Of a stretch of 64,000 bases of DNA, positions 9,306 through 63,509 are shown in pieces. The stretch's first letter is position 1. Every line of letters begins with the position of its first letter. Source of the DNA: Podarcis muralis (lineage: Eukaryota); assembly GCF_964188315.1 (NCBI RefSeq), contig NC_135664.1, positions 59,830,001 through 59,894,000 on the forward strand, in the 5' to 3' direction. Below the pieces are notes generated by a model. That model ran no database searches. It saw nothing but the letters and a program-made list of their open reading frames with translations, and was not told the origin of the DNA. The position numbers were made by a program, and so were the translations under genes.

Positions 9306-10118
9306 GGTACTGTTTTTAGTTTGGATTCTGAAGAAGAGGAGTACCACGGAATAATTGCCGAAGATAGCAATGACATCTACATCCTAACTAGTGACAACTC
9401 AGGCCAGGTGAGCCCTCCTGAGTCACCCACAGTGACAACATCTTGGCAGTCGGAGAGCTTGCCAGTTTCTTTGTCGGCTAGTCAGAGTTGGCATACAGAG
9501 AGCTTACCTGTCTCGTTGGGGCCTGAGTCTTGGCAGCAAGTGGCTATGGATCCTGAAGAAGTGAAGAGTTTGGACAGCAATGGAGGTGGGGAAGAAAGGA
9601 GTGAAAATAACTCTTCAAACTCTGATATTGTTCATGTTGAAAAGGAGGAGATACCAGAGGGGGTTGAGGAAACAGTGGTGCCAGAAGTGGTCCTGCAGGC
9701 TGACCCTGCAAAGTCTGCTTCCCCAGAACCTCCAACTGCATTGCTGGAGCCAGAAGCTGAAATTGTGTCTCTTAAAAAGCCAGGCTCCTCTGCACCTTCA
9801 CATAAGGAACACCAGAAAGAGGGGAAAGAGGTGCTGCTGCCAGAACCTGAAGCTCCAGCCTTGAGTAAACCTGTCCAGCAATTAACTCAGTCAGAAGAAA
9901 AAGCTACCCCCAAACCTGAAAGAATACTGCCTCCAGAAGAAGAAATAAAGGCCAGAAAGGGAAGCTATTCTGAAGAAAAGGAAGAGAAGACTCCTGCTGG
10001 AGAGGAGAAACCCATCCTCTTACCAGAAGGCAAATCAATTCTACTATATGGTGGGGCAGCTGCAGTGGCCATCCTAGCTGTGGCAGTAGGTGTAGCACTA
10101 GCATTGAGGAAGAAGTAG
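9306..10118 (+). CDS. BCL2L13: BCL2L13 terminal coding exon: acidic linker, SWxxESLPVSL repeats, LIR (WQQV), C-terminal TM anchor
   Basis: Acceptor ttttcttctag| at 9304-9305. GTVFSLDSEEEEYHGIIAEDSNDIYIL...GPESWQQVAMDPEE...GKSILLYGGAAAVAILAVAVGVALALRKK*; in frame with ORF 9321-10118. Confidence 0.98.
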   Translation, partial: GTVFSLDSEEEEYHGIIAEDSNDIYILTSDNSGQVSPPESPTVTTSWQSESLPVSLSASQSWHTESLPVSLGPESWQQVAMDPEEVKSLDSNGGGEERSENNSSNSDIVHVEKEEIPEGVEETVVPEVVLQADPAKSASPEPPTALLEPEAEIVSLKKPGSSAPSHKEHQKEGKEVLLPEPEAPALSKPVQQLTQSEEKATPKPERILPPEEEIKARKGSYSEEKEEKTPAGEEKPILLPEGKSILLYGGAAAVAILAVAVGVALALRKK

Positions 10119-40535: not shown

Positions 40536-40720
40536 TCAGGACCAGTTTAAGTTGAATCCCTTGGACAGCATGACTGCCTCTAGGTCCTTGTCTTCTTCCT
40601 TCTCCCGGAGTCGCTGCTCTTCGAGGAGGGCCACAAGAGAATCTCTCTGTTCCACCACCTCTAGCATTTCATTCAGGATCCTTTTCTCTTCTGACAACTC
40701 TTCATCTGTCTTTAGGTGAT
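40536..40720 (-). CDS. MICAL3: MICAL3 last coding exon (bMERB helix 3)
   Basis: ccctttctttcctag| acceptor. (D)HLKTDEELSEEKRILNEMLEVVEQRDSLVALLEEQRLREKEEDKDLEAVMLSKGFNLNWS*, matching the recalled MICAL3 C-terminus. Confidence 0.97.
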
Positions 40721-41485: not shown

Positions 41486-41585
41486 AATATCATGAGCTCC
41501 GACTCATAGCGCACTAAGGCATTCTTCTCTTGCACCAGCTTGAACCACTCCTGCATCAGCTTGGGGTCGTCCTTCTTCCCCATGC
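41486..41585 (-). CDS. MICAL3: MICAL3 exon, 100 nt, phase 1/2
   Basis: ctgttctcttggcag| ... |GTGAGT; (G)[32 protein letters not shown](F). Confidence 0.97.
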
Positions 41586-42410
41586 CTGCCAAGAGAACAG
41601 TTTAGGTCAGCTTGGAGAAAGATTCCCGCCATTTCCATAAATCCAGCAGGCAGGCAGGCAGGAACAAAAATGGGAGTGGGGCAAAATGTGCAAAGAAAGC
41701 TGAGCTAGATGCTGCCAGAGCACTCTTGTCAGATCTGCTTGTTTGTCTATGGCACACAGGAAGGAGGGTCCCCTCCAGTAAAATAAACAAAAAACCCCCA
41801 CTGGATCCATGTGCCCTGAATCTACCTTCCCCATCACATCTCCCGCCAAAATAATAGCCATAATTACAGTCACTTTTCAGTATTTTTCTTCTGTTGTCCT
41901 TTTCAATTTGGACACTTTCAAACATAGCTCTGACACTTTCCAACACTTTCCAACAAAGCCTACCTGTTTCAAGCCATGTTTTCTCACTCACACCTTAATC
42001 AACACCCATTTGTCCACTTTACATATAACTATAGAGCAATTAGGGAACAGTTCCTTGATGGGCTGTTTCAGAGTTGATTCTGGCTCCTACCAGTTTTGTA
42101 GTCTTATCTGCTGTGCTCTCCCCTTTTCAAGCCACCTGCATTAACTTAATGACTGAAAGCAACCAGTTCCTGACCACTGCTATCAATAATTTCCCTTCCT
42201 CTTGGCTTTATCAGTCACACCAGGCAGATCTGCCTCAATGTGTCTGCTAGAGATCCCTCACTTAAACAAAAAACACGTATTGTGTGGCATAAATACAGGT
42301 TCAATCAGTTGCAGTTCACCAGCTCAAGACCACTAGTGCATGGTAGAAAAGCACAAGAAGAAAATCTGCTCACATAAAAAGGAAGAGGAAGCATGGTACC
42401 TTCCCAGGTA

Positions 42411-42643
42411 TAGTCATACCTCGGGTTGTGAACGTGATCTGTGCGGGAGGCACGTTTGCAGCCCACAATGCCGCATCTGCGCACACATGTAAAGCAATTC
42501 AGCGCTTCTGCGCATGGGATCATTTTGCGCTTCTGTGCATGCACCGAAACCTGGAAGTAACCCGCTCCACTACTTCTGGGTTCGGCATGGTCCGCAACCC
42601 GAAAACACGCAACCTGCAGCGTTCACAACCTGAGGTATGACTG
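42411..42643. mobile_element. Tc1/mariner (Tigger-like) MITE
   Basis: TA-tagtcatacctcgggttgtgaacg ... cgttcacaacctgaggtatgactg-TA. Confidence 0.88.
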
Positions 42644-44493
42644 TATTTCAATAAAAGCTTAATCAATGAAAACCAAGCTAGTAGACCCAGTAGCAAAGCC
42701 TGATATGAAATAAACAGCATAGCCATTTTATGTTATTTTAGAGAGCTACAGCCACAACCCATATCTAGTAATGAAATATGCAGCTCTTTATGGGTAGCTG
42801 TTTGGATTCAGATCCTAAAAATCAGTTTGGAAGCAAGTGAATCCCTGGTTATGTGCTCCTGATGATCAGGGTCTTGGCCTAACCACTGAAGGCCCAGAGG
42901 GATTCCAGCTGTTTCCTGCACCTATCAGATTTCACCATCCTATCAGAGGTGTCAGTAGTTTAGGAAACTGGTATATGGAAAGAACACAGTCAAGTTGCAG
43001 ACAGGGTTAACTCCTGTTTCTCATCCATACCATAGATGAGTTCTCATCTCATATAAAACTAATGGGGACATCTATTCTAAGGAAAATATGATGCAAAATT
43101 TGTGCCTACTTATGTGCAAATGGCAAAATATTTGTATTAGACACTATTCTCATTATTCCAAAATGCAGACTCTTCTTATGGGGTTATGGAAGCCCAAGGG
43201 AGACACTCTAGAATGGGGATGGTCAGCTACCAAGTCAGATCCAGCTACCAAAGCATTATTATCTGTTCCTGGTAGTGCTTGTCAGTATTGAATGACACTG
43301 ACTAATGCGTGATTTGTAACTGAGGATGCCTTTATGCAGCAAGACATTATTTCCCATCACGGTCAAGAAAACGAAATGGTCCAGAGCTTCTTGGTGGCCC
43401 TGTTCCTACCACTTATTCTCAGGTAACGAGAATTCTCCTCCTCTTCCAAAACCACCAACACAGCTCCAGAACACAAGAAGCAAACATACACAGTACGGAA
43501 ATCTCACCCTAGCCAATCATGGCTGTGGATGGCTATACCTATCCATTGCTTGGTCCCAATTAAGCCTCTCTGAGCATCTCTGCACAAGGTGCCCTCATAG
43601 CCATGGTGGAAAGAGAGAAGAAGCTTACACATGCAGATGCCCAGTGCATTGGAGCCATGAGAAGCACTGGGGAATCTCCCCACCCTTTCCACTGTGAGGA
43701 TAATCAGAAAAGAAACTTCTGCACAAAGCAGCCAAATACATGTCAACACTGACCTATGGAAACTTTTGTTCATTTGTAGGATGTAGATTTTTTTATTATT
43801 ATTATTTTTAGACAGCCAATGAGCAGAGGGAGAGGCAGGGGTGGGGAGGAAAGATGAACAACTGATGAAAGCACACCATGAAAAGCAGAGAGAGTGGTTA
43901 GCCGAAGTTATACATGGCGGTCACATTCCACCCCTTTTCCCCCATGCCTTGGGAAATGGAAACACTTCAGTGGTAATCTGGTTCCACTTGGGATAAAGAA
44001 GATGCTTAGCAAGATACGGACTGCAGGAGACCAGTCTAGATTATGGCAGATCAGGAGGGTGCCTTTTCAAAGTCAAGGGTTGTTGGGAAAACCAGTCATT
44101 ACAAAAGACAGTATGCCTTTAACCCATGTGTATTATTTTTTTTTAAAGGAAGTAGACTCACACCCCACTCCCCTGCAAGATCATCCAACACGCCAAACAG
44201 AACCCTTAAGGCATGAAACTGATGCCACTACAGTCATTTCTGATCAATTGCGCCAATAAACTTCAAGACTATCCTTATCCCCACAATGCACAGCTGAAAA
44301 AAGGATACTGTACCTTTACGATCCTGCCAGACACACTTCATAACAAGGTTGTTATAGAGGGTTTCTTTGAGATTGAAGGAAAGAAAAGTTTGGCAGTGAG
44401 CCACTTGATATTGTTGCTAGCTCACTAGTGTCTCTACACCAATCCAATGGCGGTTTGGGAACGGAATGGAGGGAATGCAAGAAATTACATTAC

Positions 44494-44559
44494 CTTCATG
44501 GGCACAGCAAGGGCAGAAGGAGAGAGGTCTACGGCGTGGTGTCCCGGCATTGGGCTCAA
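44494..44559 (-). CDS. MICAL3: MICAL3 small symmetric cassette exon, 66 nt, phase 1/1
   Basis: AAG acceptor after a 208-nt AG-free pyrimidine tract; GTAATG donor; (V)EPNAGTPRRRPLSFCPCCAHE(G). Resembles a peptide recalled from vertebrate MICAL3 isoforms (not verified); CpGs retained. Confidence 0.85.
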
Positions 44560-44574
44560 CTTCAATAGAACCAA

Positions 44575-44769
44575 AGATGGGAGAGGAAGAAAGGAAGGGA
44601 AGAGGAAGTTGGAAGTGGAGAGGAAGAGAGGAGGAGAAACAGGGTGAAAATAAACAGACAAGCAAAAGGACAAAAAAGCACAAGAGTGAGAAAGAAAGGA
44701 AACAACAAGAAGAAGTAGAAAAGAAAATAATAATACAAGAAATGGAGAAGCAGAAACAAGGGGAACAGT
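44575..44769. repeat. purine-rich low-complexity tract (extended polypyrimidine tract on the MICAL3 sense strand)
   Basis: GA-rich plus strand with no CT dinucleotide between 44562 and 44769. Confidence 0.9.
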
Positions 44770-45179
44770 CTACAGATGGAACATCCTTTGTCAACACGAA
44801 TAATGGAGAAGAGCAGACTGTGGCACTGGGAGGGGAAACAGTGTGGGCCACAAAAGTTACTGGGATAATGGGGAAATGCCAACATTTGACATTTCTTGTG
44901 CTTGGTGACTTTTCACCCTCCATGTCACATGGTGCAGTTAAGAGATAAAAGCACTAAGAGGAGGGTGGACAACATTAAGTTTCTAAAAGACCAGGAGAGC
45001 AAATAGGTTTTAAAAGGCCATCTTGAAAATTAGCTTGGCACATTCCATGTGGTTTTTTTGTGACATTGTCCAAGGAAGTAGGTTGACAGTGGCAAGTATT
45101 ATGTGTTTAGTAAACAAAGGCAGATCATGGCGCAAAACAGGACCGACTGCCTATGATGGGCAAACAAACCAAGACTAAA

Positions 45180-45320
45180 CCAGGGATACAGAACCTGTTG
45201 TCCCCCTGCCCCAAAGGATTTTGGATTCTCATTCACCCCAGTCAACATGGCCAACAGTCAGGGTGATGAGAGCTGTAGTCCAGCAACTTCTGGAAAGCCA
45301 AGTGTTCCCCTATCCTGGGT
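45180..45320. mobile_element. decayed hAT MITE
   Basis: ccagggata...aacatggccaacagtcagggtgatgagagctgtagtcc...ccctatcctgg. Confidence 0.55.
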
Positions 45321-46767
45321 CTAACCAAAGCCTTGACCGGTATTTTACACGTATTCATGTATAGTTTGTATTTCTGGCCCTGCCAATATCAAGGGTAGAC
45401 AGAAAGTTGAGGACTATGCCCCACTGGTATGTTTGTTTGTTTGTTTGATTGGGGGGGAGAATTTTGAGTATGTGGCAATTAATTAGATAAAACACAGTAA
45501 ATTAACATTTCCCAAATTTCTGATAAAAGAGGTAGTTTGTATTAAAAAATAATAAAATGGGAGGAATACTTCTCAAACTTACACACTCTGATGCAGAGAA
45601 TAGCCTCTTCCTATGGGTTGGCACTTATAGGAACCATCAATTATCCAAGGAATTCCTCGGTTTGGGAATTATTGCGGTAGATTATACATAAAGAGATGAA
45701 TAATCTTATAGAATAGGGTTGAGGAACTGGGTGCTGCTGTGTACAGTGATCTATATATTACAGTGATCTATATATTACAGAAAGACCTGTGGCCCATTGA
45801 CTAATCTGTGAGTAGAATGGAAGTGAAAGAAAAATGCCACTGTGTAACAAGGAGCGACCGAATTTATAAAAAAGAGGACATTCATAACCCACTGGAATCA
45901 GATCTACACGCACATATAATGGAGAGGGAAAGCCTCAGTTCTCATTTACGAAGATAAGGTCTGGGGAGGGAACAGCTTTTAGAAGGGACCATCACAGAAC
46001 TAGAGCAGTAACACACAGGACAGACCAAAGTTAAAAGGGAGGAGGCACATCAGTTTGCAAATAGTGTGTGAATGAGCAATGTGAATCTCTCAACAGGAAG
46101 AAACATGTATACTCAGTGTGAAAAGGGTTAAAAGTACAACACATATACATGTTACATGCTGCCCATCTATACGTGAAGACTCATCTTGTTTGAAGACATT
46201 CCATAGTATCCCTAGGCCTAGACAACTTTCTTCTCTCTCCCCCCCCCTTCCAAAAAAACCAAACAACCAACAAATTGAATGCCTTAAAAGTATTTTTGTC
46301 GCTTGGGAAAGAGATCCATGAAAATCCATGTAGTGTAACAATGCACACAGGTTTTTCTTTAAAGTGGCAATGCAATGGTGCTTTGTTTTTACTTCACAGG
46401 TCTCCTTCAAGGGCTAGTCTTGGATAGATATGTATTCCATTCTTAGTATGTGTAAAAAATACAAGAATACAAGTGGGTTGCTTGGATTAAATGGTTCTAA
46501 AATGCACAGTCAAGCTGTACACCAAGGGAAATACTCTCTGAATATTCCTGCATTTGCTGAAGTTCTTCCTCAGTCATGATTAAGGTTAAGATGACCTTTA
46601 TGTTTTGCTTTGAACTGGGTGGATTCCATTGTGTATACTGGGCTGCTACTAGACCAGGCTTCTATGCAGATTCAGTGTGTATCAAGGCTATATATGGAGC
46701 TTCTACCACTTCCATGGTTGCAGCAACCTAGTTCTAGCTGCCACACTCAGTGATACAGATCCTGAAT

Positions 46768-46904
46768 GAGTGGTGGGAACCTGTGGCCCTCCAGATGATG
46801 TTGGGCTGCAATTCCCATCACTCCTGACCACTACACATGCTAGCTAGGGCTGATGGGATCTGTAATCCCACAAGATCTGGAAGGCCACAGGTTTCCCATT
46901 CCTG
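46768..46904. mobile_element. hAT MITE (23973 family)
   Basis: gggaacctgtggccctccagat ... atctggaaggccacaggtttccc inverted arms. Confidence 0.75.
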
Positions 46905-47079
46905 CCCCACATGCAGATGCCAGTTCACATAACAGTACCTCTATGCAAGCACAGACCACCTCCCAATTTTGAAGGCCATTGCATGGGATCTCACCTGAAG
47001 CTTTCCAGGTGAGATAACAGTAAATTGAGCTTGGAGGCAAAACCACTGCTAGTGCAAACCATGGTTTGACATAATATCT

Positions 47080-47700
47080 TAAGTGTCTCCATGGAGCCCC
47101 CCGACAATCCCCTCCGTCTATGGTGTAACTAAGTCAGTTGGAACCACAGGATACCCTTGCTCCCAGAGTCTGATACTGGAGTCAGCAGAGATGGGTTTCA
47201 AGAGATAAGGCAGACTGAAATATCAACTATGGAGGGTGGAGGTTCTTGGGCTTATTCCACCACATCGATAGGCAGGCCTCTTGCTACTATTGTCAATAAA
47301 CCTATATCCAATAGCTACAATGTTTTTCCCCAACAGTACCTGCAGCAGAAGCTGGACCATTAATAGAATGTCTTATCCAACTCCATGGATAATCCCCAGA
47401 GAATATTCATAGCATCCGATTAGTAAAGATGTGTTGAATAGTCCATTATGTATACAGATAATTCAATAATATAAATGGATAAATCCTTTCTCCGCATCAC
47501 TGAACTTAAAGCAAAAAAAGATCACAAAGGCTACTAGACAGAAAACATTTCTATTGCTCGTCAACAAATGCCTATATTAGCAAGTTATGTGTAGCACACA
47601 GACCGCCTGAAAGTACACTCAGAACAAAATGTCTAATAATTTATAAAAGCTCCCATTGCCAAGAGATGATGATTCACCACTGGTAACTGACTAGTGAGAG
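47080..47700 (-). mobile_element. probable old L1/Tx1 ORF2 fragment (approximate)
   Basis: Frameshifted minus-strand motifs MWWNKPKN, GSKGILWFQ and PWRHLRYYVK resemble the PIWNNP, W..KGI and Y.QLRHYI blocks. Confidence 0.35.
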
Positions 47701-48123
47701 ACTATTTAAAAGCCTGAAGCAATTTGTGAAATACATATCTTATTGAAAAACTAGACTGATCCCGATCAACTTTTTGCTAGGCCAACTAGGATCAAGCGGC
47801 AACTCAACTCACTTTGGGTTTGGTTAAGAAATGCCTTCAAGTACCATGCAGCAAGGCATCAAACTTGAACAGGATCACACCATCCTTTTTGTTCTGCTTA
47901 GGACATGAATTGAAATAGATCTTATGTAGCTCAGATACTTGCAGAGTTCCAACACAAAGAATGCATCCAGCAAAAGATAATTATTTAGTGTATGTTTCCA
48001 AAACTAGAAACAAAAATGCCCAAGCTAAATGAATCTTGGAATCCAGTTCTGTGCACGTTTGCTTGGAAGTACAGGTGCCTAAGTTCTGATGCAATGCACA
48101 GTCATCTTGCATTAACTGAACTA

Positions 48124-48357
48124 CAGTTGTATCTTGGAAGTCAAATGGAATCCGTTCCGGAAGTCTGTTCAACTTCCAAAACCAAAGTGCAGCTTCTGAT
48201 TGGCTGCAGGAGCTTCCTGCAGCCAATCAGAAGCTGCAGAAGTCCTGTCAGACATTTGGGTTCCAAAAGAACATTCGAAAAAATCACTTCCAGGTTTGCG
48301 GCATTCGGAAGCCAAAACATCTGAGTTCCAGGGTGTTCGGGATCCAAGGTACAAGTG
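48124..48357. mobile_element. Tigger-like MITE
   Basis: TA-cagttgtatcttgg ... ccaaggtacaagtg-TA; internal palindrome ttctgattggctgcagga..tcctgcagccaatcagaa. Confidence 0.88.
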
Positions 48358-48968
48358 TATTACCATTGCAAAAAAAGTTGACAGTAAGACGCATGAGACC
48401 CAAAGATGTTACTTTACTACCATAAATGTCTCCCTTTTGTTTAAGCACTAGGTACAGGTACAACTTACAGTGGATTATTGTAGGGTTCCATATGTCTGGA
48501 TTTCTTGGACACCACGTTGTTTTGGCATTTTTGTAAAAAAAAAAAAAAGGCTCCTGGTTTTTGAAATATGGTAACCCTAGATTATTGCAGCACTAAAATA
48601 ACTTTAAAACAGATAAACCCACTGTACAAATGCATGCACACATATGTGCACTGGATGCTAACACTGGATACAAACCCAAATTCCATACATTTGGCTGCAG
48701 TTAGTCTTCTGCATATGATACCGTATGTGATATATAATAAATATGAAAACCCCTTCCCCCCTTTTCACTGGATATTGATAATCAGCCTATAAGTGTGATG
48801 TATTCAAATCAGCATGCATAATGGTATCATATGATCACTTATGTTTGGCATCAGATGTTCCAAAACTCAAGAATTCACTCAAGAGTTGGAGAAGGGTGTC
48901 CTGCATTATGCATCACCAGGCAAAAAAGTCAAGTCAGGGAACTGAAGCAAGGGTGACTGCTGAACTAC

Positions 48969-48970
<2 letters not shown>

Positions 48971-49012
<42 letters not shown>
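48971..49012. repeat. (AGT)14 microsatellite
   Basis: Direct reading. Confidence 0.95.
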
Positions 49013-49013
<1 letters not shown>

Positions 49014-49470
49014 ATAATAATTTACATTTGCACCCTGTCCATCTGGGTAAGGTGAATCCAGAGAGAAGTGAGGAAGTATAAATTTCTATTTGAGCCATGT
49101 TTGACCCTCTGCATTTTAGTCTGAACATCTCTCTTGTGAACATCTGTCAGACCTGCCCCTCCATCTCTGATCAACTCTGTTTTATAATCAATTATACCTC
49201 CCCTTTCTTCCAGTGCAAGATTACTCAGCCATAAGCCTGGCATTGACATCAAATGCTGATAACCATGTTTTCCTCCTGCTACAGAGTCCTTGGAACTGAC
49301 TCCTTACATGCCAAGAGACCAGTACTGCCTCTACACTCCTTGATACTGTTGGCTACACCACTGCCTTCTTTTGCCCTGGTTTGCTAGTGCTTAAAAATAA
49401 TTATTCCAATATCACTTAGAGACATCCAAAAAGATTCTGGCTAGTAGATACATTTTACTATTACACAATA

Positions 49471-49620
49471 CAGTGGTGCCTCGCAAGACGAAATTAATCC
49501 GTTCCGCGAGTCTCTTCGTCTTGCGGTTTTTTTGTCTTGTGAAGCACGGCTATTAGCGGCTTAGCGGCTATTAACGGCTTAGCGGCTATTAACGGCTTAG
49601 CGGCTTTAAGAAAAAGGAAA
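49471..49620. mobile_element. truncated Tigger-like MITE with internal 18-bp tandem repeat
   Basis: TA-cagtggtgcctcgcaagacg terminus; unit cggctatta(a/g)cggcttag repeated about 3 times at 49547-49606. Confidence 0.75.
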
Positions 49621-52600
49621 CAGCTGGAGTATGAGTCTGACCAAAGGGTTTGGAGCTTAGCACCAATAGCCCTGAATGTAGCCACTGGAATTTTGCTTCC
49701 AATGATGGATATTGGAGTCCAAACCAAGAATAATGGGAAACACCTTCATGCCAGCACCCGAAATTGCTGCTGGTGCTAAACACCTAAAGTGATGAGAAGG
49801 AAATGCCTGCACTGAGCCCCTTCTCAGCACAACATCCTTCTCCTGTACTCACCAGGTGATCAAGCCATGACTGCTGAGCATTTCTTAGGCCATGCATATG
49901 CCATACAAGAACATGCGCAGGCATTCACGGGTGTGGCATATATCTCTGCCATATAGAGCAACTGTTTCTGTAGGGGTCCTAAGAATACATCTGCACGCTG
50001 AATCTCTCTCGTATCAAAGCAAGAGCATTTAGTAGCCGGATCACAAATGAACATATGCCCAGGGAATAGCAAGAACGTGGTCGGAACATGTTTCCTCCTT
50101 TATCTTGAGCAGAACCCATTGTGAATGCAGAAGTCAACTCAGGTTGAGACCCATTGGTTACATTTACTGGCAAGATGAAGGAGAGGACTTTCTTTCACCG
50201 CCTTTAGAAGTATATATAAATTTTAGCATTTATGCGGTGCTTTGTGAAGTGCCTTGGCTATTCAAACCAATCATCCTATTATAGCTATTACAACAGGCAT
50301 AGAAATGTATTATATGCAACCATTTAAGGCAGCCATTATTAAGCCCATACTTCCCCAAGGTGGCTTCGTGAGAACAGCAGAGGTGAGGTCTGAACCAGGG
50401 ATTCCCTAGCTCACAGCCTCTTAGCCCCTACACTACAGTGACTCTTGAGCACTCTGGCAGCCCTGTGAGGAAGTACTGAACAAACACCAGTCACAGAGGA
50501 GTATAAAAAGAACTAACACTACAAAGCCACGTGTGTCTTTTTCTGCACATAACACTGCATTTTATTTAAAGGGATACTGCCAAGTAGTGAAGTTTTCTGC
50601 TGGGGATTAAAATAAAGAAAGAAAGAAATCAAGATAGATTAAAATAATAATGATCTTCCATTCGGAATTGTGAATTATTACTGCTATCTGGGCTGGAGTT
50701 GAAACTAGCAAAAATAAAAAAATAAAAAATGTCTTTAAAACCCCAAAAGTGTAGGGAAGAAGTAGCCATGGCTAATATTGTGTACATTTATCCAAACAGG
50801 AAATGTAGGGGGGGAAAGGATATAATCGTGAGAAGCAAATGAGATTTATTAATTTACTTATGCTAGTTCTTTATGACAGAAAGTGAGGTTAGTTAACGTG
50901 AAAAACGACAGTGTCCCTTTAAATGACTCTGTTGACTACTTTTTAAAGCCACTGTTAGCAAAAATGACAAGACTGCTGCCTTCAAGAGGGAATTAGGAGG
51001 GGAAGGGGGGGGGGAGGAGAAGGAAGTGTGGGAGCTGCATCAGCTAGGAGCAGGACCTGTTAGGTGTAACTTTGCATTAACCCTTTTACATCTCTGTCTG
51101 TGGGCACACAATGCCCCCTAGCGGCACACTTGGAAAGAAACCCCACATAGGCAGAGCACTGGCCTCCAGAGAGGAGCCAGCAACTCCTTCTAGCAGGGAT
51201 GTGTCATTTTGCTTTGAGCCAGGGCTGGAGAGCCAACAGCATTTGCTCCACCTACTGATTGACTCCAGGTGAGTGGAGGCATGGAGAAAGGGCTTAAATC
51301 TTTCTGTTATCTCCCACAACATGTTAAAACAAGAAATAGTTTGGTGGCCAAGCACCTCAGGCACTTAACTCTCCAAACCGACCTCTGTATATGGCTTCCA
51401 TGTCAGCGGCTGAAGTGTGGAGGGAGAAAACTGGCAGAGCATTTTGCTGCTCACAATGGGGAAGAAAGGGTCTATGTCTCCTTTGCATGGAGGAAAGGTG
51501 CAAAATAATGAAAGGGGGACCCTTTGAGATTTGGGACTATGATAGGGCCAAGTTAGGAAATTCCTGGGGGCCTATAACCTCCTGGGCTACCACTTACCTA
51601 TTTCTAAACTATGAGGGTTGAAACCACAAAACACTGTTGGTCTCCTTAACCTGCAAACTGCCAGTCTGAAGAACACGGGTAGCTTGCTTGATTTTTATGG
51701 AAGAGATGCAGCAATAGTTCAAAAACATTAGTGATATACAAAAGTCACCTTAAGGAGACTTGGCAATACATCCTTCTGTCACCAACTCCCAAGGAGTAAG
51801 GACCAGAATTTAAGACACCTTGGAAAACAGCTGTAGTACCAAAGATGTGTTGAATCAGTCCTGCATGACTGGTAACCCACAATGTCAAATGTAGCCCACC
51901 AGGGTTTCAAGCAACATCTGATGTTTTGTTTTGCCTCAGACTGCAAAAACAGGAAGGCTATCAAGTACCTGCAATGTCATAATACATGACCGGTAAGCTT
52001 GATGGGACACAATTTGTGCTGGCCTGTGTTAAAGTTGTAATACTACTGCAGAGTGGGGGGTGTTATTCATAAAAAAGTCACTATACATGGGAGTGGGGCG
52101 GGGGGAGAAAGACAAAAAAGAGAAAAGAATAGGAACTATATCATGTTGGGGTGATCTTTGAGGATGAACTTTACACAAGGAAAGAGAAAGAGCCTGTGGA
52201 TACCATCTGAGGGCTTGTTCAAACTCTTCTTTAATTTCAGAAATGACAGGGCATGTGTAACATTTGTGTACTCTCCTGGCCACCCATCCATTTGTAGGAA
52301 CTCTAGCACTCAGACTGCAGTTTGGCAGTGCGGATTAAGTGTGATAATCTGTACAACTTTCCCTACAATAACAGGCAATGGTATTTAAAGAAGCATAGCA
52401 GTTAAAAAGAAAATATAGCAGTCCTTATAAAGTGTAACAAAGTGTGTTGAGGGGGCAGCTGTCACTTCTTTGAGGGTTGGGGACAATCCTTGAGGGAGAA
52501 TAAAGTATATAAGTGCTAGATTATCTTTGGGAAGAAAAATCTAATCAATAGTTTGGATTTACTTATCAACAAAATGCATAGCACAACTAAATTTAGGGGC

Positions 52601-53684
52601 TAAACTGGGGGTGGCTAACCTATGGCCCTCAATCAGTCCCAAACAGCATGGCCAACAGTCAGGGCTAATGAGAGCTGTAGTTCAACAACATCTCAAAGGT
52701 TAGCTACCCCAGGTTAAATTATGAAGTTTGAAAAGAGGCCATGATCCAGAGAGCTCCTTTAGCTAAAGTCCTGTACATGTACCCCAGAGGTCCCTCTGTT
52801 TTTCATTACAGCACCACCACCTGAAACTACATTCAAGCTACAACTACTTTTCACAGCAGACACTGACCACTGGCAAGAGCAGCAATCCCATGTCTCTCTT
52901 TCTCCTCTTCCTGGATCCCCTGCAATGCTTAGAAATTTTAAAAAAAGCAACATATAATATTGTACTTCCTTGTCCCCCTCCATTTCATTGGCTGCCACAA
53001 AATGAATGGGAAGTCTTTCATTGCAATAATGTGGCACTACACATTTTTAAATGCCAGAAGGATAGTCAAATTAGAACACTGCGGCAAAAACATAGTCTTG
53101 CGGCACCTTAAATACTAACACATTTTTATGGCGTAACCTTTCATGGACTGAAATTCTTAAATGTCACCAATGGAGAGAGGAGGAGGAGATGACTCAGGGT
53201 TTTTTACCTCCATGTTTCAGAAATGGTTTCTCCAGTATTATTGTGTTGGAGGAAAAAGAAGGCACCCAGCTTACAAGAGAGTCCCCTGTGCATGCACAGA
53301 ACTCAGCATGTGACACTTTGGATCAGGCCTCCAGTGAATCCCAGAATAAAAAAGGAAAAATTTCAAAATGTTGCCCGACAAATTTTGAGTATTAAACTTC
53401 TTTCTCAGGAAAGGTTATTTTAAGTTGGTGCAGATGTTTATCCTGGTGGGGAAAAGAGTAAAAAAAAATCAACCCTTGAGAAGGGGTTTAATATTCAAAA
53501 AGTGATGAGAAATAAATTCTCTGTACTTCTGCACATCTCTTCCACTTTCATTCCTGGTTGTTTTCCTACAGGAAACCACAATGGAAACCATTCCCCCCGC
53601 CACCTGTCACTGGGGTGTTTTGCAAAAATCCTAGACTTCATGTGACATTGCCCAATTGTGCATCTGACTGTTAACTAGATGGCT

Positions 53685-53800
53685 GATGGTTCGAGCCCAC
53701 CCTGGGAAGGCTGTGAGCAGGATTCCTGCATTGCGGGGCGCTGGACCAGATGACCCTCAGGGTCCCTGCCAACTCTGCAGTTGTGAGATTCTACGATTCC
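53685..53800 (+). mobile_element. 3' part of tRNA-derived SINE with CR1-like tail (19855 family)
   Basis: ggttcgagccc...gattcctgcattgc...gatgaccctcagggtccctgccaactct...gattcta. Confidence 0.65.
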
Positions 53801-54001
53801 AAAACACTGCTCATTAAGGACTGCTAGTTCTCCTCCGAGCTGGAAAAGGGGTTGTGCCCTAGCCAATCAATTAGGTGCAAGACTGGTTTCTTCTCATTGC
53901 TTGTGAGGAGCCAGGGATGGAAAGAAGTAGGTGGAGGGAGAGGGTGGCGGGAGCAGGTGTCAGCAGGGTTAGTGCCAGCAAAGAGGTTCTGCCATACATA
54001 C

Positions 54002-54052
54002 CACCCAGGTGCAAGTCGATGAGGTCACTGTAATAAGACTCTCCCCAATAGT
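54002..54052 (-). CDS. MICAL3: MICAL3 small symmetric cassette exon, 51 nt, phase 1/1
   Basis: ctctctctcttcaccgattccttgttgtag| ... |GTATGT; (D)YWGESYYSDLIDLHLG. Joins in frame LRGEA-DYWG...HLG-VEP; peptide recalled from MICAL3 isoforms (not verified). Confidence 0.85.
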
Positions 54053-55495
54053 CTACAACAAGGAATCGGTGAAGAGAGAGAGTTATTGGTTCAAGTACCC
54101 ACCCCTGCTAGCCCTCCCCACTCCCTGCCCAGGATTCAAAGCACTCTGTAAGAGAAATTGCATACATAAGAGAAGCAAGACAGGGAAAGAGAGAGAGACA
54201 GAAACAGAAGAAACAAGAAATCATGCAACTCTATAATAAATATATACACATACATATATACGGTATATACTGTAAAGACGGGGGGAGGATAAAGTATTCC
54301 CTGGTAAATAGGCAGGGAGGACAGGCAGGCATGGATTTCCAGGCAGAGAAGGAGAGCAGGCTGGACTCTGTATGAGGATTTGTCACCTATACTGGTTTGT
54401 ATCAAGATGAGACACTGCACTGTTATTTTGGGGGAAGGATCCACAAACATTCTCCAGTAGGGAGGGAATTCGGGCAAGGATACATCTCCATTCAAGAGAG
54501 CAGGGGAAGGCGTTGGGCTGGGTCTTCTCATTTCATCCTTCTTTTTATTCAGCTACATTGTTTTGTGTTAGCTAAGCAACCAGAAAAGTACTAGGGTCTT
54601 CACACTTGCAGCTTCTTTTTGGTAAGTTTTTTCACCTCCGGGATAAATCCATAAACAAGCCCAATGGAATCTGGGATCTTGCATGTAAGATTGGCCTTGG
54701 GAAGGCTAAGGGCATAGCCAATTCTTTGGTAACTTTTCTCACACATCTACATTCCTGCGATCACTTTCCATAAATGGCAGATACTGTTTTATAGGATGTG
54801 TTGTCAGAAGTAGGAAACATGAAATGGCCACATGGGCCGGAGGTGTCTGGATTTGGGCAACGAACTCAACACCATATAACTAAGAAAAACTAAGCAGTCG
54901 CCATGCCCCTTCTGCTGATTGTAAGGGTTCTTCCCCTAAAATAAATATGTTCTACAAAGAGTCTCCATTCTGACCCAAATGAAAACCCCTCCAGTTTAAA
55001 TAGGGCATCCAGTATGCCTAATAATCATGTCAATGTCTGCTGGGAGTATATAACATTTGGAAATCTTTATACATTCTGGTAAACTATGAACAGCCTTATT
55101 AAAGCAGTAATGATGTATGCAGCAGACTTTAGGGTCACTTAACTCAAGCGAACAAAAATATGTATAGAAGACTTAAATCCTCTGAACTGCTCATCATAAA
55201 GGGTTTCCTTGTGTTTCCAGGATGACACTTTTTAAATTAATTTATTTCTAATCAGAAATAAAATGTCAATTGTTACTTTAGTTTCAACCCCTGAGAAGGA
55301 AGCACCACGACAGACTCAAGAAAATTGGTGTCAGAGTTGGTCCAATGATCAAAAATTTAACTTTGGTCAAGATAGGTTTGGACCTTCTATTATGCAAGCT
55401 GAGCCAGTTGGCCTCAGGTGCCAGATATTTTGGGGGAAATCATTAAAGGCCACCGAACTATAATTATTATTACTACCAAGTAGTAAAGGGCACTA

Positions 55496-55746
55496 CAGTC
55501 GTACCTCGGATCCTGAACGCCCTGGAACTCAGACATTTTGGCTCCTGAACGCTGGAAACTCAGAAGTGATTGTTCCGGTTTGCGAACGTTCTTTTGGAAT
55601 CCGAACGTCTGACAGGGCTTCCGCAGTTTCTGATTGGCTGCAGGAGCTTCCTGCAGCCAATCAGAAGCTGCAATTTGGTTTCCAAATGTTTTGGGAGTCA
55701 AATGGACTTCTGGAACAGATTCCATTCGACTTCCAAGGTACGACTG
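55496..55746. mobile_element. Tigger-like MITE, inverted relative to the 48124 copy
   Basis: TA-cagtcgtacctcgg ... ccaaggtacgactg-TA; its right end is the reverse complement of the 48124 left end. Confidence 0.9.
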
Positions 55747-58700
55747 TACTTGGATTTTCTGCCTGGAATACCAAAGTGCATTGGGCTGTTTATGGAATGC
55801 ACAAAGTAGGTTCCCTTGACACGTCACACAATAAGATGAACTTCAGTTTTCAAGATATAAAGTAGCATAGAAAGTGAACAAAAGTGCTCCAGGCAGAAAA
55901 TCACTTCCTATGTAAAAACAATGTCTGCATACGGCAAGGGCATGTATGCTGTGTGTTTACTACAACATGATAAGCACATACTGTGTCTGTTTCACCACAA
56001 GTGCACATAGTAGGAGAGCTTTTGTGTATTTGTCCCGTGTTAAAGTGTGCATGCAATGCTCCTAACAAGAGAAGCAGTATCAATGTAGAATAAGTCTTGT
56101 GTGAAATGGACACAAAATTCTAATTATCTCATACACAAGGAAGCTGTTTTAACAATAAAGAATGGGTAGTTTGGGGAAGGTGTTCTCTTCCCATCTGCAT
56201 TACCAAAGCAGAAGCTCCTTTTCCAGCAAACCTATTACTAGCCATTAAGAGAATAAGGCTTTGTAACTGTAGTCTGCAGGGAATAACGGTTTGGCCAATA
56301 CTGCATACATAAGGCAGTCAAGGTTGTTTGGACAGTATACTGAAATAAGTTACTGCTGATATTGAAGGTGTGTAAGGAAAAAGAGGTTTTAAGGCACATG
56401 AAAATCTAAAAAATTAATAATTATCTCATCTCAAGAAACAAGAGCATGCCCCATTAACAGTCTATTTTTCATGGGATTACTGAATATGGACATCTTTCAG
56501 CTATAAATCCTGAATTCAAAAGGCAATTATTAATACTCATAGGCACACCTGTGAGGCCCAAAAATAAGCCAGCCTTTTCATTTGTCTCTCCCTCTCCACT
56601 TCCCCATCACATTTTAGATATCTAAAGCCATCTCTAATAATTTGCCAAAGCACCACCACTGCCCATGAAGTGTGGCAAGTAAAGCCCTCAGTTGTTTGCA
56701 AAGCTCCTCAAATTCTGATGACACCACCTATAAGGATGCTGGGGGACAATGAAATGAATGTCAGGTGACAAAAAAAGAGTTTGAGATGGCTGTAGACTGT
56801 TGAATGTAGAGATGCATAATTCTTTCCATTCTTTTAAAACTATATACCTGCATTCATTTTATGAAACAATTTAAACAACAATATTTAAATAGTTGTAAAA
56901 GTATTCCAGGGATTAAGTTGGACTGAGTACATTATTTGGCCCCAGCTGATGCTGTGAGCTACCACTAGCAAAAAGCTGCACTCTGCAGTCCTACCAAAAC
57001 ATATTCTCTATAGATTCTCTCCCTTTCAAGTTGGAGGCAATCAAATTCTCTCTGATGCAACAAGAATGACTCTGAAAGCCTGCAAAAAGCATTTTAAACT
57101 GCAGGAGTCAACTGCAGGATAAAATAAGCAAGTTTGGGCAGCTAGTGGTGATGGCACTATCAAAACGTACTCATTAACTCAAAAATGTTAATATCTGTAT
57201 GTAGCTTTAGGGAAGACTGCCTTTGAAAATAAGGACAAGGTATGATGCTCAGTTTGTGATTGTGGTGCACTAGATGTTGCTGGTTTCAATTTTAAAGAGA
57301 TTGAGTCCCACACAGTTCCCTCCCCGGGGCTCCCTTGCAGGTGCCAAGATCACTGTAGGCCACTCTCTGCAAAGTAATTTTCAACTGTAAGGATACATAA
57401 GGCTTCCTGAGGTCTAATCCACAATTATGGAATTCCTAATTTTTTAAGATTTGCCAAAACCTGGGTATCTAACACAGGTAGGGAAAGTCTCCAGTAACTG
57501 GGGTGTCATTTGGTGGTCAAGGATAGCACACAAGGGATTAAAATTTAATTCATCCTGTGTTGCCTTTGATATTGTTATATCTGTCTCAAATAGGCTGTTA
57601 TTTACCAGGAAATTTCAGAACAGGGCAGGATATACATTGTAATAAAAAGAAATACATTGTAATAATTAAGTGTAATGTTCAGGTAGTATCTGTTCTTAGT
57701 GCACTGATTGTCTGGTCACTGATAATCCTACCACATTCCTATTGGAAATTTCAGTGTGTCAATCCAAGCTTCAAACAAAGCAGAAAAACAATTCTTCCAG
57801 GCTCTTTTGAGGAAAGTCAATTTAGTTACATTTCCCTCCCAAACTTAAGGTCAGTATAACAAAAGGTTACTCGTCTTTACATATCTCAAAATTAAGTTAA
57901 ATTCATTTTCACCAAGTAGGTTGCCTCTTACACCTCTGGTAAATGGATCATGTGAAAACCTGGGCTTTTGTGTGTTTGTCTCTACTCGTTTCTCAAGGAA
58001 GGAGTGGTAGGATATGTCAAGTGAGGAAATCATCATCTAACTATGTTCTCTCCCACGGATGAAGTAGACATTATGGCAGACACAGGGCTACAGGTAAAAC
58101 AGTATTCTCATTACTACGTCTTCCTGCCTCATAAGGTCTAGTGAAACTCACCATGCAATGTCTTGCAGTGAATTCTCTCACCTCGGCACCCAATGAAGGA
58201 AGGAGGGAGGCAGGGAAAGTCAAGAGTGACGACATCACGTTGCATAGCAAATTTCACTGGCCATTAAGAAGGGTATGTGGGCAGAAGACTACATACAGAG
58301 TTTTGGGTTTTCAGTAGCAGTCCTGTGTGTGCAGTAACATCTAGTTCTGCTCTTAATGTCTTTCATCTATGTTAATTCCAAGTACCATTCATTAGACCAG
58401 GCCATTAAGTATAGAGGTTCATTCCATTAACAGCAGATGACGATGACAACTGTTTCACATGTTGTATTGAATTTCATTCCACATGCCTTGAAGCTGTGTA
58501 TGATTTTGCAGAGATCATGTGGTACTTGCTGGGGCTGTTCTGTGATGGTCCCTTATGAGGGTGCTAATGCTGATTCAAGGCACAGTGAATTAAAAAACAC
58601 AAACTTATATCAATTACTTTCTTCTCTTTTTCATCTTGCTGGGCAAAGTGGAGGCTTCCTTGCCACGACCAAGTTTTATTTCCTAAAGGAAAGCTAGCAG

Positions 58701-59033
58701 ATGGGTAACCTATATGTATTACCACCTTTTTCCAAGATGCAACTAATAATTGGACAAAACTTTGTCCTGAAGAAGTGAGACGTATTTTCAGAGCAAATGA
58801 AACTCAGCTAAGGGATCTTGCCATTTAGGTAGCTTCACAGGCAGAGAAGCCCAAGATCTGATAGAGAAGGGAAATGGTGAATTTTAATTCATTTGTTTAA
58901 AAAGATAATTTAATAAAAGAACTTGCAGCTTAGGAAGGGACCAGTCTGTATAGCTAGCACACAGGTTGCTATGAACCTTTGCATAAAAATGTAATAAGAA
59001 AAGAAAAACACAAGATGGAAGACTGGAAGGTAC

Positions 59034-59127
59034 CTGCTTCTCCTCTAAGAGCCTTCTCAACAGCGACTCCCCTCTCCTCCAGCTGCCTTTGCTTCTCTTC
59101 TACTTGCTCCAGCTGTCGTTGGATAAT
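59034..59127 (-). CDS. MICAL3: MICAL3 exon, 94 nt, phase 0/1 (bMERB helix 1)
   Basis: ttttccctcttttcccatag| ... |GTACCT; IIQRQLEQVEEKQRQLEERGVAVEKALRGEA. Confidence 0.97.
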
Positions 59128-60203
59128 CTATGGGAAAAGAGGGAAAACACACACATAGGTCCTCATTCTCCTGTGTTCAAATGGCAGGATACTAATTTCA
59201 AGAATCTCCAGTGCTTCCAAAGCAGACCAGCGCCACCTAAGAGCTGTTCCAGCGGCACACACCAGAGGGGCCTTAAGGTTTTGTAGCTGATGATCAACTC
59301 CTGGGGGAAAAGAGAGCATTGATGTTTTCCAAACAGTGGCCAATCTGGGAATTTCCTCCCCAAGTACCTGGTTCGGCAACATGCTCTCTATGTGTCCTTA
59401 AAAATGGTGGGTGAAGGATTCAGGGTGTGCGCACTATGGGGACCAGGGGCTCGTCTGTACTTTTGCTTTCCCCCAGGGAAATCTACTCTTTAGCACTGAA
59501 GAGTGGGTTTTCATGAGGCAAGCAGCGGGGCGAACAGAAAACTTCTCAGACTCATGTTTTCTAGGCATGGGACAAGCAAAGTATGGACAAGCCCTAGATG
59601 TGTGGGAAGTACTCACACACCTTTCTCAAAAATACCTTCAAATAATTTTGGAATCTTTCTTCAAATCCTACCTTTTCCACAACATCTCTTAACCACAACC
59701 CCCTACTATATTTGAGTTATATGAATTTGTGTATATTCTTCCTCTTGCCCCAGTGCCCACCTTCCTCTCCTGTGTCTCCATTTGGTCAAAAACTAGACTG
59801 AAAGCTCCTCAGGGCAGGGATATGCCTTTTTGTTTGTGCTGCTGTGTGAAGTGTCTTCAGGATATTGATAAGTCACACATTCTCCAGCTACTGTTTCGGA
59901 TCCGTACAAGGCAGAAGTGTATATAGGTATATCGCTTGCAACTGCTCATACTGGTGTCTTACAAAAGCGGCACTCCAGGCAGCAACAAGAGAGTAATATG
60001 TATCAAACCTTACATGTAGGAAGTGCAGTTAATTATGGGGAAACGTCAGGACCATACCACCAGACAGGTCAATGTAATGTGACCTTCCTCAAGACATGCA
60101 GTTTTCTGATGGACACTGCAAAGATGTGCACATAGAAGGTCATCTTCTTAAAGGCTCATGAATTTTTCTTCCTGGAAATTATGGATGAAAATTATGGCTT
60201 TAC

Positions 60204-60311
60204 CTGAGCCCTGTGTAACCTCTTCAGCTCCTCCTGCTTGGCTTGACGGCGAGCAGCTTTCTGCACCCGCCTGGTCAGTTTGGCATTGAGCTCATCCTCC
60301 GTGTATGCTTT
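60204..60311 (-). CDS. MICAL3: MICAL3 exon, 108 nt, phase 0/0
   Basis: cctctctttattgctgcag| ... |GTAAAG; KAYTEDELNAKLTRRVQKAARRQAKQEELKRLHRAQ. Confidence 0.97.
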
Positions 60312-62324
60312 CTGCAGCAATAAAGAGAGGAATGCATTTCAGACCCTTACAACAAAGCTGTCAGCCTCAATAAGTAGGAACAGAAGGTGCTACTTGCTGG
60401 GCTTTCTTCTCAGTGGGCAAACTGTCAATTTGAGTGCTAACAGTGCAGTGCGTGGGCCTTGGTGCAGAAGTAAGGTGTGAAGGAAAGGCATGAATCAGGT
60501 GCAAAGCAGTGATTTAACAGAGAGCTTCCAGTTACAGCTGCATTCTCTTCAATTCTCCTTGTGGCTTGCCCTAAAGATAGGAGGTGTCCCTGATTTCACC
60601 AACTTTCTTACAAAGAAGGGAGCCTATTGTATTACTTTTTGACCTAGGCAAAGTAAAAAAAATAAACCCATGACCAAATCATCTTACGAAGTAGGCTGAG
60701 AGTTCGTTGTAGATTAAAGCACATGGTATACTGCCTATTTCCTTGTGCTACCATGAGTCCAGGTTGCAACTCCTACCAATCACTTAATCAGCAGGGCATG
60801 GAACCACTCAACCTGCATTTTCAATGCAACAATAGAGGAAACTCATGATCTAAAGGCCTATGTAATGCACTAAAGGCCTATGTAATCACTTCAACCTGCA
60901 AGAGGGAATAATGGCAATATGAATTTTTTGCTATATTACAAAGTCAATTCTTAGCACATACAAAACTAGAACGCAATGAGGAAAGCTACGCAAATATCCT
61001 TCCAGCTCACATAAAAACATTCTAGGCAAGCATACAACTGTGAGAGCACCCTAACAGCAGTCTTAAATGGTCAAGTAGCAGTTGTGTCACATGGGCCTGC
61101 TGATCATACAACTTCGCTATAAATTTGTGGTGTGAACTAGCTCTACGGGGTTATAAGCTGCCTATGTCTTCCAGTTTTATGGACACATGCTCCAGTGTCT
61201 TTTAAACATCTTGTCAAAATCAATAATATACACAACTAGTTTCAAGATAGACATGCAACTTACAGAGTTGTTTTGGGGCTGAGAATTCACATCTATGTTG
61301 TAACAAGATGTGTGGAGCATGTGTTTTCCTAACCTATTATCCTCCCTTGACAATTCAGAGCAGCCCCCCACTGACACAAATATCCCAGCATCCCCTATTA
61401 CCTTCATGCCATTTTTAAAAAATCAAGTCAACAAGATTTGGGTGGCTGAAATCCTGGTCAGATTAGAGATTGGAAGTCATTAGCGTTACCAGAGTTTATT
61501 AGTGCTAAAAAGATGCTAAATCACAGGAAGATCACTTTGGAGCCCCACTAAGCCCATACCTAACAGTTTCACTGGTAGCTTATGTAAGTATTTGGCCACA
61601 GAATGTGTAAAAGTGATGTGTTTGCCCTGAGAAAAGCAAATCCGTGAATTGCCTCTTTCTTATTCAAGACTCCAACCTGAAACCAAGTGCTACTTCTCAT
61701 ATTATTTTTATATGTTAAAATCCACACTTCAGCAGGAAAACCTGCATTTCCTGAGCTGAGAATGCTTGCACACTTCTTTCCCATTTGGCTCAATGTATGC
61801 ATCAAGAAGTTGAAGCATATACTACGCCAAAAGAAGAAAACACATCTGGATGACAACTCTCACATTACAATGTGCACGCCTTCATAGATGTGTAGATTTC
61901 GACACACAAAATGGTAACATGAGAATATAACCTGTGAGCAGAGTTGGAAGGCATCGCTGCACAACAAACTTGATACTGGTTTCTCCCAAGAATCTTGAGA
62001 ACTCTAGCTTGCTGAGAAGTCAGTTTGACATATCTAGGTCATACTCACATAGAACTCAAGAGTTCCTTAGGGAAATGGAACAGGTACAAAACCAATTACA
62101 GCCACTGATGTGAATGTGCTTAGAATGGGAAGAGGGGCAACTGAGGTGATATTGTGATACCCCCTAAAACAATATGTTACTTGGACTGCAATTTGGAACC
62201 AGCTTTTATCAATAATTCAGAATTAACCAAATGATTTGGAGAACTGTGGGAATGAACACAAGTATTTGCAAAAGTTGTTGTTGTTAAAATGATGCTTGTT
62301 TTGTGCACTCTAACTATGTGTATA

Positions 62325-62829
62325 CCGTATTTTTCGTCCCATAGGACGCACCTAGTTTTTTGGGGGGGAAATAAAGGGGAAAAAATTCCCTTTATTCCCC
62401 CCCCCCAAACCAGGTCGGGGAACAGCGGGATGGCGGTGCTGCGCCTCCCCGCTGTCCCCCGAGCTTGTGGGGCTGGCCGATGTCTGCCCGAAGCGCAGGG
62501 CTCTCTGCTTCAGCGCGCCCTGCGCTTCGTGCAGCAGGCTGCTATCCGGAGCCTAGGGAGCCCTGCGGGACATCCACGCTGCGGATGTCTGCCCGGCGCG
62601 AGGGCCGCTCTGCTTCAGGGCGCCTCGCGCGCCGGGTGGCAGGCTGCTATCCGCAGCGCGGGGAGCCCTGTGGGACCTCCCGCGGGCTCCCCAGTATTGC
62701 TGATAGCTTCCTGAAGCCTGGAGAGCTCCAAGCTTCAGCGAAAGCCTGTATTCGCCCCATAGGACACACACAGATTTCCCCTTCATTTTTGGAGGGGGAA
62801 AAGTGCGTCCTCTAGGGCGAAAAATGCGG
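62325..62829. mobile_element. pogo/Tc2-like MITE (8818 family) with internal GC-rich duplications
   Basis: TA-CCGTATTTTTCG ... cgaaaaatgcgg-TA. Confidence 0.9.
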
Positions 62830-62899
62830 TACTTATATTTTTACACTGACTTATATGGAGTGTACAGAAACATATCAATAAATTATAATGGCCAAGGCT

Positions 62900-63110
62900 A
62901 CTGTGTGGCATGGTGATTAGAGTAGAGGACTACAATTGGGGAGATCCAAGCTCAAATCTCCATTCAGCCCACTGGGTGACCTTCAGCTGATCTCTTCCTC
63001 TCAGCTTACCCTACCTATCAGGGTTGTTGTGAGGATAAAATGGGGAAATCTTGTAAGCCACCTTGATCTCCTTGGAGGATGAGCAGAATAAAAATGCAAT
63101 AAATAATAAA
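62900..63110 (+). mobile_element. CORE/MIR-like SINE
   Basis: tggtgattagagt...ctctcagcttaccctacctatcagggttgttgtgaggataaaatgggg...aataaa tail. Confidence 0.7.
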
Positions 63111-63458
63111 GTAAAATATTTTCAATTTATACCAGATATAAGTAAGTACCTAATATGTCCAGCAAAATACCCTTTAAAACCTTTTCAAAAAGCAACAAAC
63201 CAAGATCAAGAGGTTTTCTCTCTCTGGTTGATCCTTGATGCACATACTGCATGCATTTCAAGTGAGCATGAAGGTTTAGGATTTGGCATTTTCTTGATCA
63301 GGTTGCCCTTATTTTTTTTTAACCATTTCATACATGCACAGTCAGGAATTACATTAGTACAAACAAAGGCAGGGAGATGGGACATAGACTATAGTTCTGG
63401 TAGGTTAATAATGGGAATGCATGCAACTGTGGCCAGTCAATGAGAATGGAGACACTAC

Positions 63459-63509
63459 CTTTGATGCGTATGATCTCTTGAATGCCAAGGCGTGTGGGAC
63501 GTAAATCGA
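63459..63509 (-). CDS. MICAL3: MICAL3 small symmetric cassette exon, 51 nt, phase 0/0
   Basis: ccttccccctcccccttttaaag| ... |GTAGTG; SIYVPHALAFKRSYASK, in frame with the next exon; four CpGs retained. Not shown as such in the ORF track. Confidence 0.8.

Follow-up and report, generated by a model that had tools for sequence, protein, structure and literature searches.

The 64,000-nucleotide (nt) stretch of Podarcis muralis DNA considered here (the window; RefSeq assembly GCF_964188315.1, contig NC_135664.1, positions 59,830,001 to 59,894,000) carries the 3′ part of MICAL3 on its minus strand, and its sequence is free of N. Towards the end of the gene, a phase-1 intron of 17,448 nt, lying between the exon ends at 59034 and 41585, splits a codon within the loop that joins the first two helices of the bMERB domain. 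It is in this intron that three cassette exons, here called A, B and C, are located, while a fourth, U51, is further upstream. What is present here is very probably a lacertid MICAL3 gene with ordinary alternative splicing at its 3′ end, annotated before, and with three further candidate exons in the intron that are due to chance. The real cassette exons are all present in earlier annotation, and U51 is the likely counterpart of an exon that has been published.

Gene organization

Translation of the 94-nt exon 5′ of the long intron (59127-59034) gives IIQRQLEQVEEKQRQLEERGVAVEKALRGEA, followed by the first base of a further codon. That codon is completed by the 100-nt exon 41585-41486, with its GMGKKDD sequence, and the last coding exon of MICAL3 has its end near 40539. 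An original prediction, made from the sequence of the window, had a phase-1 gap of about 17.4 kb between these two exons, and both its coordinates and its phases are right. It also had two convincing symmetric exons within the gap, one of 51 nt (DYWGES..HLG) and one of 66 nt (VEP..CPCCAHE), and these are the conserved and annotated A and B; its phase-0 51-nt exon upstream of the coiled coil is the annotated U51. What it overlooked is a third cassette in the same intron, C. The boundaries of exon A are ttgtag/ACTATTGG...GGGTG/gtatgt and those of exon C are ctcaaag/AAACCC...CGTAAAG/gtacag. Positions of all of these features, and of the candidates that were rejected, are collected in the table.

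Table. Exons, conserved blocks and rejected candidates of the MICAL3 3′ region, in window coordinates and in transcript order
Feature	Position	Strand	Size, phase and content	Basis
U51, cassette just N-terminal to the coiled coil	63459..63509	-	51 nt, phase 0-0, SIYVPHALAFKRSYASK	AG/GT boundaries, isoforms
Constitutive exon, start of bMERB helix 1	60204..60311	-	108 nt, KAYTEDELNAKL...RLHRAQ	87.5% identity to Chelonia
Constitutive exon, end of helix 1	59034..59127	-	94 nt, phase-1 end, IIQRQLEQVEE...EKALRGEA	sequence
C1, rejected	58256-58182/58152	-	75 or 105 nt	open AG..GT stretch
C2, rejected	55996..56061	-	66 nt	open AG..GT stretch
Conserved block around A	53837..54244	-	TGCATG 175 nt upstream, CU-rich tract, ACTAAC 29 nt downstream	alignment and motifs
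Cassette A	54002..54052	-	51 nt, phase 1-1, DYWGESYYSDLIDLHLG	AG/GT boundaries, conservation, isoforms
Conserved block around B and C	43546..44832	-		blastn against L001, Limosa and Chelonia
Cassette B	44494..44559	-	66 nt, phase 1-1, VEPNAGTPRRRPLSFCPCCAHE	boundaries, conservation, isoforms
Cassette C	44314..44364	-	51 nt, phase 1-1, ETLYNNLVMKCVWQDRK, 129 nt downstream of B	lacertid isoform identity
C3, rejected	43629..43691	-	63 nt, within a conserved non-coding block	open AG..GT stretch
Constitutive exon, start of helix 2	41486..41585	-	100 nt	sequence and protein matches

Placement of the inserts in the bMERB domain

Folds and searches, here and below, used database proteins or single exons of the window. 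The C-terminus without inserts matches the MICAL3 bMERB structure 5SZG over the full domain (E 2.3e-79). Matches to Pfam family PF12130, whose curated cut-off is 24.6 bits, score 143.6 and 157.1 bits and form one stretch in the insert-free form and two in the form with A, B and C. The split is near profile position 30, and residues 127-231 of the A+B+C form correspond to profile positions 30-134. When the A+B+C tail of Podarcis is modelled with AlphaFold (18-sequence alignment, mean predicted local distance difference test score, pLDDT, 74.7) a three-helix fold is formed by residues 8-66, 134-181 and 190-237, and the 56-residue insert at 71-126 has pLDDT values below 50 except for a short helix within C. 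The 17, 22 and 17 residues that A, B and C respectively add are predicted to be flexible. The profile split and the model thus agree in placing all of the inserts in the bMERB loop that connects helix 1 to helix 2, as had been predicted. The known structures 5SZG (MICAL3), 5SZH-K (MICAL-cL) and 5LPN/8Y6K (MICAL1) are likewise of the bMERB domain, but their constructs are all insert-free.

A separate observation concerns the other loop of the domain. Sturnus vulgaris protein XP_014725511.1 has a 28-residue hydrophobic insert, GESKREYFMDCMCVFLALCLLIVFDISV, between MAVE and DHLKT, in the loop that joins helix 2 to helix 3, and this looks like a retained intron in the gene model.

Conservation of cassettes A and B

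When the 32-residue downstream exon was used to query 1.84 billion representative proteins, MICAL3 proteins were returned together with numerous genomic read-through fragments, and among the matches were an identical A peptide in a Varanus protein and B in a Chelonoidis isoform. Word searches with turtle isoforms as queries were considered for the top 120 matches each. All 120 matches to the A query, from turtles, crocodilians, birds and mammals, contain the A peptide, which is identical throughout except for one residue in wombat, and it is also identical in annotated squamate isoforms. B is likewise present in 120 of 120 matches to its query, with 83 isoform clusters identical and 37 differing by one residue; these matches are from birds, turtles, Gekko and Rhineura. 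Further afield, teleosts carry a related A, a sturgeon gene model carries a related B, and lamprey has related versions of both, with the two in tandem in Lampetra isoform X16.

At the nucleotide level exon A is identical to that of Chelonia mydas at 51 of 51 positions, with about 190 nt of intron conserved on either side. Exon B is almost invariant across four sauropsids and, taken with its upstream flank, is 84% identical to its bird counterparts across 350 nt, in a block that takes in 270 nt upstream of B. Alignment to the orthologous turtle intron gives scores of 182, 149 and 38 bits for the A region, B and C, respectively, with a shuffled maximum of 24-30. Exons A and B are real, and their peptides recur unchanged in hundreds of RefSeq/Ensembl isoforms. 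Both date to the vertebrate ancestor and have been kept since before the lamprey split.

The peptide encoded by A is acidic and aromatic. That encoded by B has two motifs, RRRPLSF and CPCC, which are unchanged from gecko to birds. RRRPLSF would fit the sites of basophilic kinases, and for CPCC lipidation or metal binding is conceivable.

Isoform combinations

The isoform census covered 559 fetched MICAL3 proteins, which are gene models, mostly from Gnomon. At the junction the inserts found were none, A, B, A+B, B+C and A+B+C, the two exceptions being truncated models, one from Chrysemys with read-through after LRGEA and the other Rhineura X8, considered below. Named examples include Chelonoidis X1 and X2, Chelonia mydas XP_043395878.1 (X4, A+B), Zootoca vivipara XP_034982826.2 (B+C) and Podarcis raffonei XP_053261183.1 (A+B+C). 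In gene models A, B, C and U51 are each included in some but not all transcripts, which is the case for none of the three rejected candidates. Comparison of the window with annotated vertebrate MICAL3 isoforms revealed identical A, B, C and U51 peptides and identical junctions, with no difference found.

Exon C came from a squamate-centred search. RefSeq isoforms of Zootoca vivipara and Podarcis raffonei have, straight after B, a 17-residue insert to which the C peptide of the window is identical, and C is always accompanied by B. This identity suggests a lacertid source for the window, the C-terminal exons being too conserved to tell species apart. Only in lacertids do the models have exon C in frame and coding. 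As A, B and C are all phase 1-1 and have lengths that are multiples of three, any subset of them keeps the frame. A claim to this effect in the original prediction is correct by phase and length, but with C lacking from the models unless B is present, it holds as arithmetic only.

In the intron between B and C (44365-44493, minus strand), whose 129 nt are also a multiple of three, there is an in-frame stop near 44420, so that retention of this intron would truncate the protein.

Candidates that resemble exons

For the three further candidates that had been proposed for the intron only sizes were given (63, 66 and 75 or 105 nt), and of these sizes the best phase-1 stretches that are open and bounded by AG..GT are C1 to C3. 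A candidate poison exon had been proposed as well, without a position. Open, phase-compatible stretches of the kind proposed do exist, but at chance level. The 17,448-nt intron has 1042 open, frame-keeping AG..GT stretches. Rough splice-site scores are 7.2-10.1 for C1 to C3, with 10.2 and 8.5 for the real exons A and B. Control strands and regions yield, per 17.4 kb, about 12, 9 and 5-6 candidates at the scores of the 63-, 66- and 75/105-nt candidates, against 22, 13 and 6 for the real intron and phase. AG/GT boundaries, a length divisible by three and a kept frame are features of A, B, C and U51 and of C1 to C3 as well, and since decoys also have them they cannot discriminate real exons; similarly, scoring of splice sites and open frame fails to separate real exons, A and B included, from decoys.

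For conservation, C1 to C3 were compared with turtle and birds; the turtle assembly has an N gap at the orthologue of C3. Exon and flanks are conserved together for A, B and U51, and for C at the donor end only; C3 is conserved as sequence only, and for C1 and C2 the orthologous intron of turtle gave zero match above shuffled controls. The block around C3 aligns with that of birds at about 65%, but the bird sequences have no acceptor AG, differ by an indel of 1 nt and have their donor at a shifted position. At the 3′ end of C3 (43635) is an invariant RBFOX-type motif, CTGCATGT. Because its splice sites and frame are lost in birds and the invariant part is this motif, C3 seems to be a conserved intronic element rather than an exon. 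The peptides of C1 to C3 are in none of the 559 fetched MICAL3 proteins, to which Zootoca vivipara and Podarcis raffonei contribute at least 27 isoforms. Self-BLAST of the window placed no candidate within a repeat. As exons, C1 to C3 were rejected on their chance-level scores, the failure of conservation and their absence from the 559 proteins.

Alternative explanations

That A and B are mutually exclusive rather than independent cassettes was suggested by the isoforms first encountered, which had A alone or B alone. The A+B tandem, though, is annotated in at least 11 sampled genera, for instance Chelonia, Chrysemys, Caretta, Pelodiscus, Paroedura, Hemicordylus, Anolis, Elgaria and Podarcis, as well as in lamprey, and mutual exclusivity has next to no probability left. 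Not much better placed is the proposal that at least one of C1 to C3 is a real cassette, lineage-specific or unannotated, in a larger combinatorial array. All three are open, in phase and bounded by AG and GT, with scores as good as those of A and B, C3 is within a block conserved in birds, and with C a lineage-specific lacertid cassette does exist. Against this, equally good candidates occur in equal number on control strands, and to the loss of the splice sites and frame of C3 in birds must be added the lack of a turtle match for C1 and C2. The suggestion in the original prediction that the extra candidates are lineage-specific or unannotated exons finds no match in the 559 proteins, many lacertid isoforms among them, and we regard a real cassette among the three as very improbable.

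Exon C is less clear-cut. It could be an old, regulated exon that truncates the protein and brings about nonsense-mediated decay (NMD), or a splicing-control element of B, with its open frame in lacertids being incidental. Lizard, turtle and two birds share an unchanged donor, TAAAG/GTACAGTATCC, and differ on the acceptor side; it is only the 3′ end and donor that are conserved across sauropsids, and the phase-1 frame of the inferred bird orthologue meets TAA. Rhineura isoform X8 ends with ...CCAHEVEPSVTTLL followed by a stop; this is the C orthologue read in another frame, and as that frame contains a stop the protein is truncated before helices 2 and 3. Exon C of the window also has a stop in the other frame, after KPSITTLL, and use of C without B is never observed in models. 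In the in-frame stop of the Rhineura and inferred bird orthologues and in the invariant donor there is a likeness to conserved poison (NMD) exons. The difference is that lacertid C is open and annotated as coding. In the window its inclusion brings in no in-frame stop, the identical in-frame 17-residue peptide is present in two independently annotated lacertid genomes and in many isoforms, and an open 51-nt version is possible in Chelonia too, where the sampled models have no annotated use of it. A truncating or splicing-control role with an incidental open frame is accordingly a minority possibility. Alternatively, C may be an old sauropsid exon, truncating in amphisbaenians and probably in birds, that a small frame change converted to a 17-residue coding cassette in lacertids. 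This is offered tentatively, and jointly with a second suggestion, namely that cassette B could be a phosphorylation or lipidation switch within the Rab-binding domain; the two together are a doubtful proposition at present. If true, C would be the third module of the bMERB loop that joins helix 1 to helix 2, and a lineage-specific one.

Regulatory flanks and the upstream cassette

The conserved block around B and C is likely to consist of splicing-regulatory flanks, to judge from alignment. Inclusion of the cassettes would be set by conserved intronic UGCAUG (RBFOX-type), CU-rich tracts and ACUAAC. TGCATG is mildly enriched on the sense strand, with 17 occurrences observed and about 9 expected from shuffles. 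In developing mouse cortex several Mical3 exons change, partly under the control of PTBP2 (PMC3896118).

The part of the block downstream of C, 43546-44138 on the minus strand, is the one that aligns with birds at about 65% and has the invariant CTGCATGT at 43635. A further conserved non-coding element is at 45978-46113 (minus strand), in the intron between A and B; lizard, turtle and two birds all have its core, CTAGTTCTGTGATGGTCCCTTCTAA, unchanged. Every frame of the element is interrupted by stops, and it has no match to an Rfam family, the scan of 41700-64000 having yielded zero family matches. It may serve in splicing regulation or as an enhancer.

The U51 peptide is in some annotated isoforms and missing from others, and varies independently of A, B and C. 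Downstream of U51 (63220-63458, minus strand) there are three TGCATG motifs, at 34, 121 and 204 nt, with ACTAA elements nearby; all three motifs are kept in Chelonia, and this fits activation by RBFOX. A 51-nt exon of rat Mical3 is included in differentiated smooth muscle and is activated by RBPMS, RBFOX2, MBNL and QK, and by the rat coordinates the exon transcript-downstream of this event is 111 nt (PMC12721327). U51 is like the rat and human MICAL3 exon in having 51 nt, 17 residues and a position directly before the coiled coil, with UGCAUG downstream in the lizard. The exon after U51 has 108 nt here and mammals have one extra codon, so U51 is likely, from exon sizes and position, to be the orthologue of the published smooth-muscle exon. 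In contrast to the present bMERB-loop cassettes, what that publication (PMC12721327) concerns is U51.

Other features of the window

Beyond the LRGEA donor, at 58971-59033 (minus strand), read-through is open for 21 codons, GTFQSSILCFSFLITFLCKGS, before a stop. The Chrysemys Ensembl model A0A8C3IYK5 ends likewise past LRGEA, with GTLKCCLFLMFAD. It is possible that such read-through gives a truncated isoform without helices 2 and 3, or that it is annotation noise. On the plus strand there are long open stretches at 1285-1770 and 9306-10115, with ..LLNFGVTYLEDYVADYIIQQGGW.. and an acidic, serine-rich stretch of 270 residues, which we take to resemble exons of the neighbouring gene BCL2L13. In the GC-rich segment 30000-32000 (GC 0.54, with about 0.42 in its surroundings) a neighbouring gene probably has a promoter of the CpG-island type.

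Functional implications

The original prediction proposed that the cassettes form a modular switchboard for Rab binding, autoinhibition or membrane targeting. The MICAL3 bMERB domain's C-terminal half suffices for Rab8A, while MKLP1 requires the whole domain (PMC5647383), and the minimal Rab8A-binding region of that mapping lies away from the insert loop. The N-terminal Rab site of bMERB is, in Mical1, the low-affinity site (10.1101/2024.06.17.599268). Inserts would lengthen the hairpin loop beside the surface on which CH/LIM docks and, by analogy with Mical1, beside this low-affinity site, and they may supply short motifs, which in the case of B would be a site of basophilic-kinase type, RRRPLSF, and a cysteine cluster, CPCC. 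For a flexible insert of 17-56 residues in the loop, an effect on autoinhibition, on the weak Rab site or on binding to MKLP1, or the addition of new motifs, would therefore be more plausible than a change in high-affinity Rab8 binding, and it is more likely that the inserts tune autoinhibition or partner recruitment than that they act on the high-affinity C-terminal Rab8 site.

Some points weigh against the reading of the region as a set of annotated, frame-keeping cassettes that modify the bMERB loop, and need to be kept in mind. Use of the exons in this species is deduced from gene models of other species together with sequence identity. The RefSeq/Gnomon isoforms are themselves predicted, and where they combine distant exons the combination may be a product of the modelling. 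Finally, what is proposed for loop length, motifs and autoinhibition is drawn from Mical1 and from generally known sequence motifs.

The solved bMERB structures and the binding studies that were found all have the insert-free form, yet A, B or both are present within bMERB in most of the annotated MICAL3 isoforms that were sampled from sauropsids. Should the inserts alter autoinhibition, the low-affinity Rab site or the binding of MKLP1, current models of MICAL3 regulation would describe only one of several natural forms.

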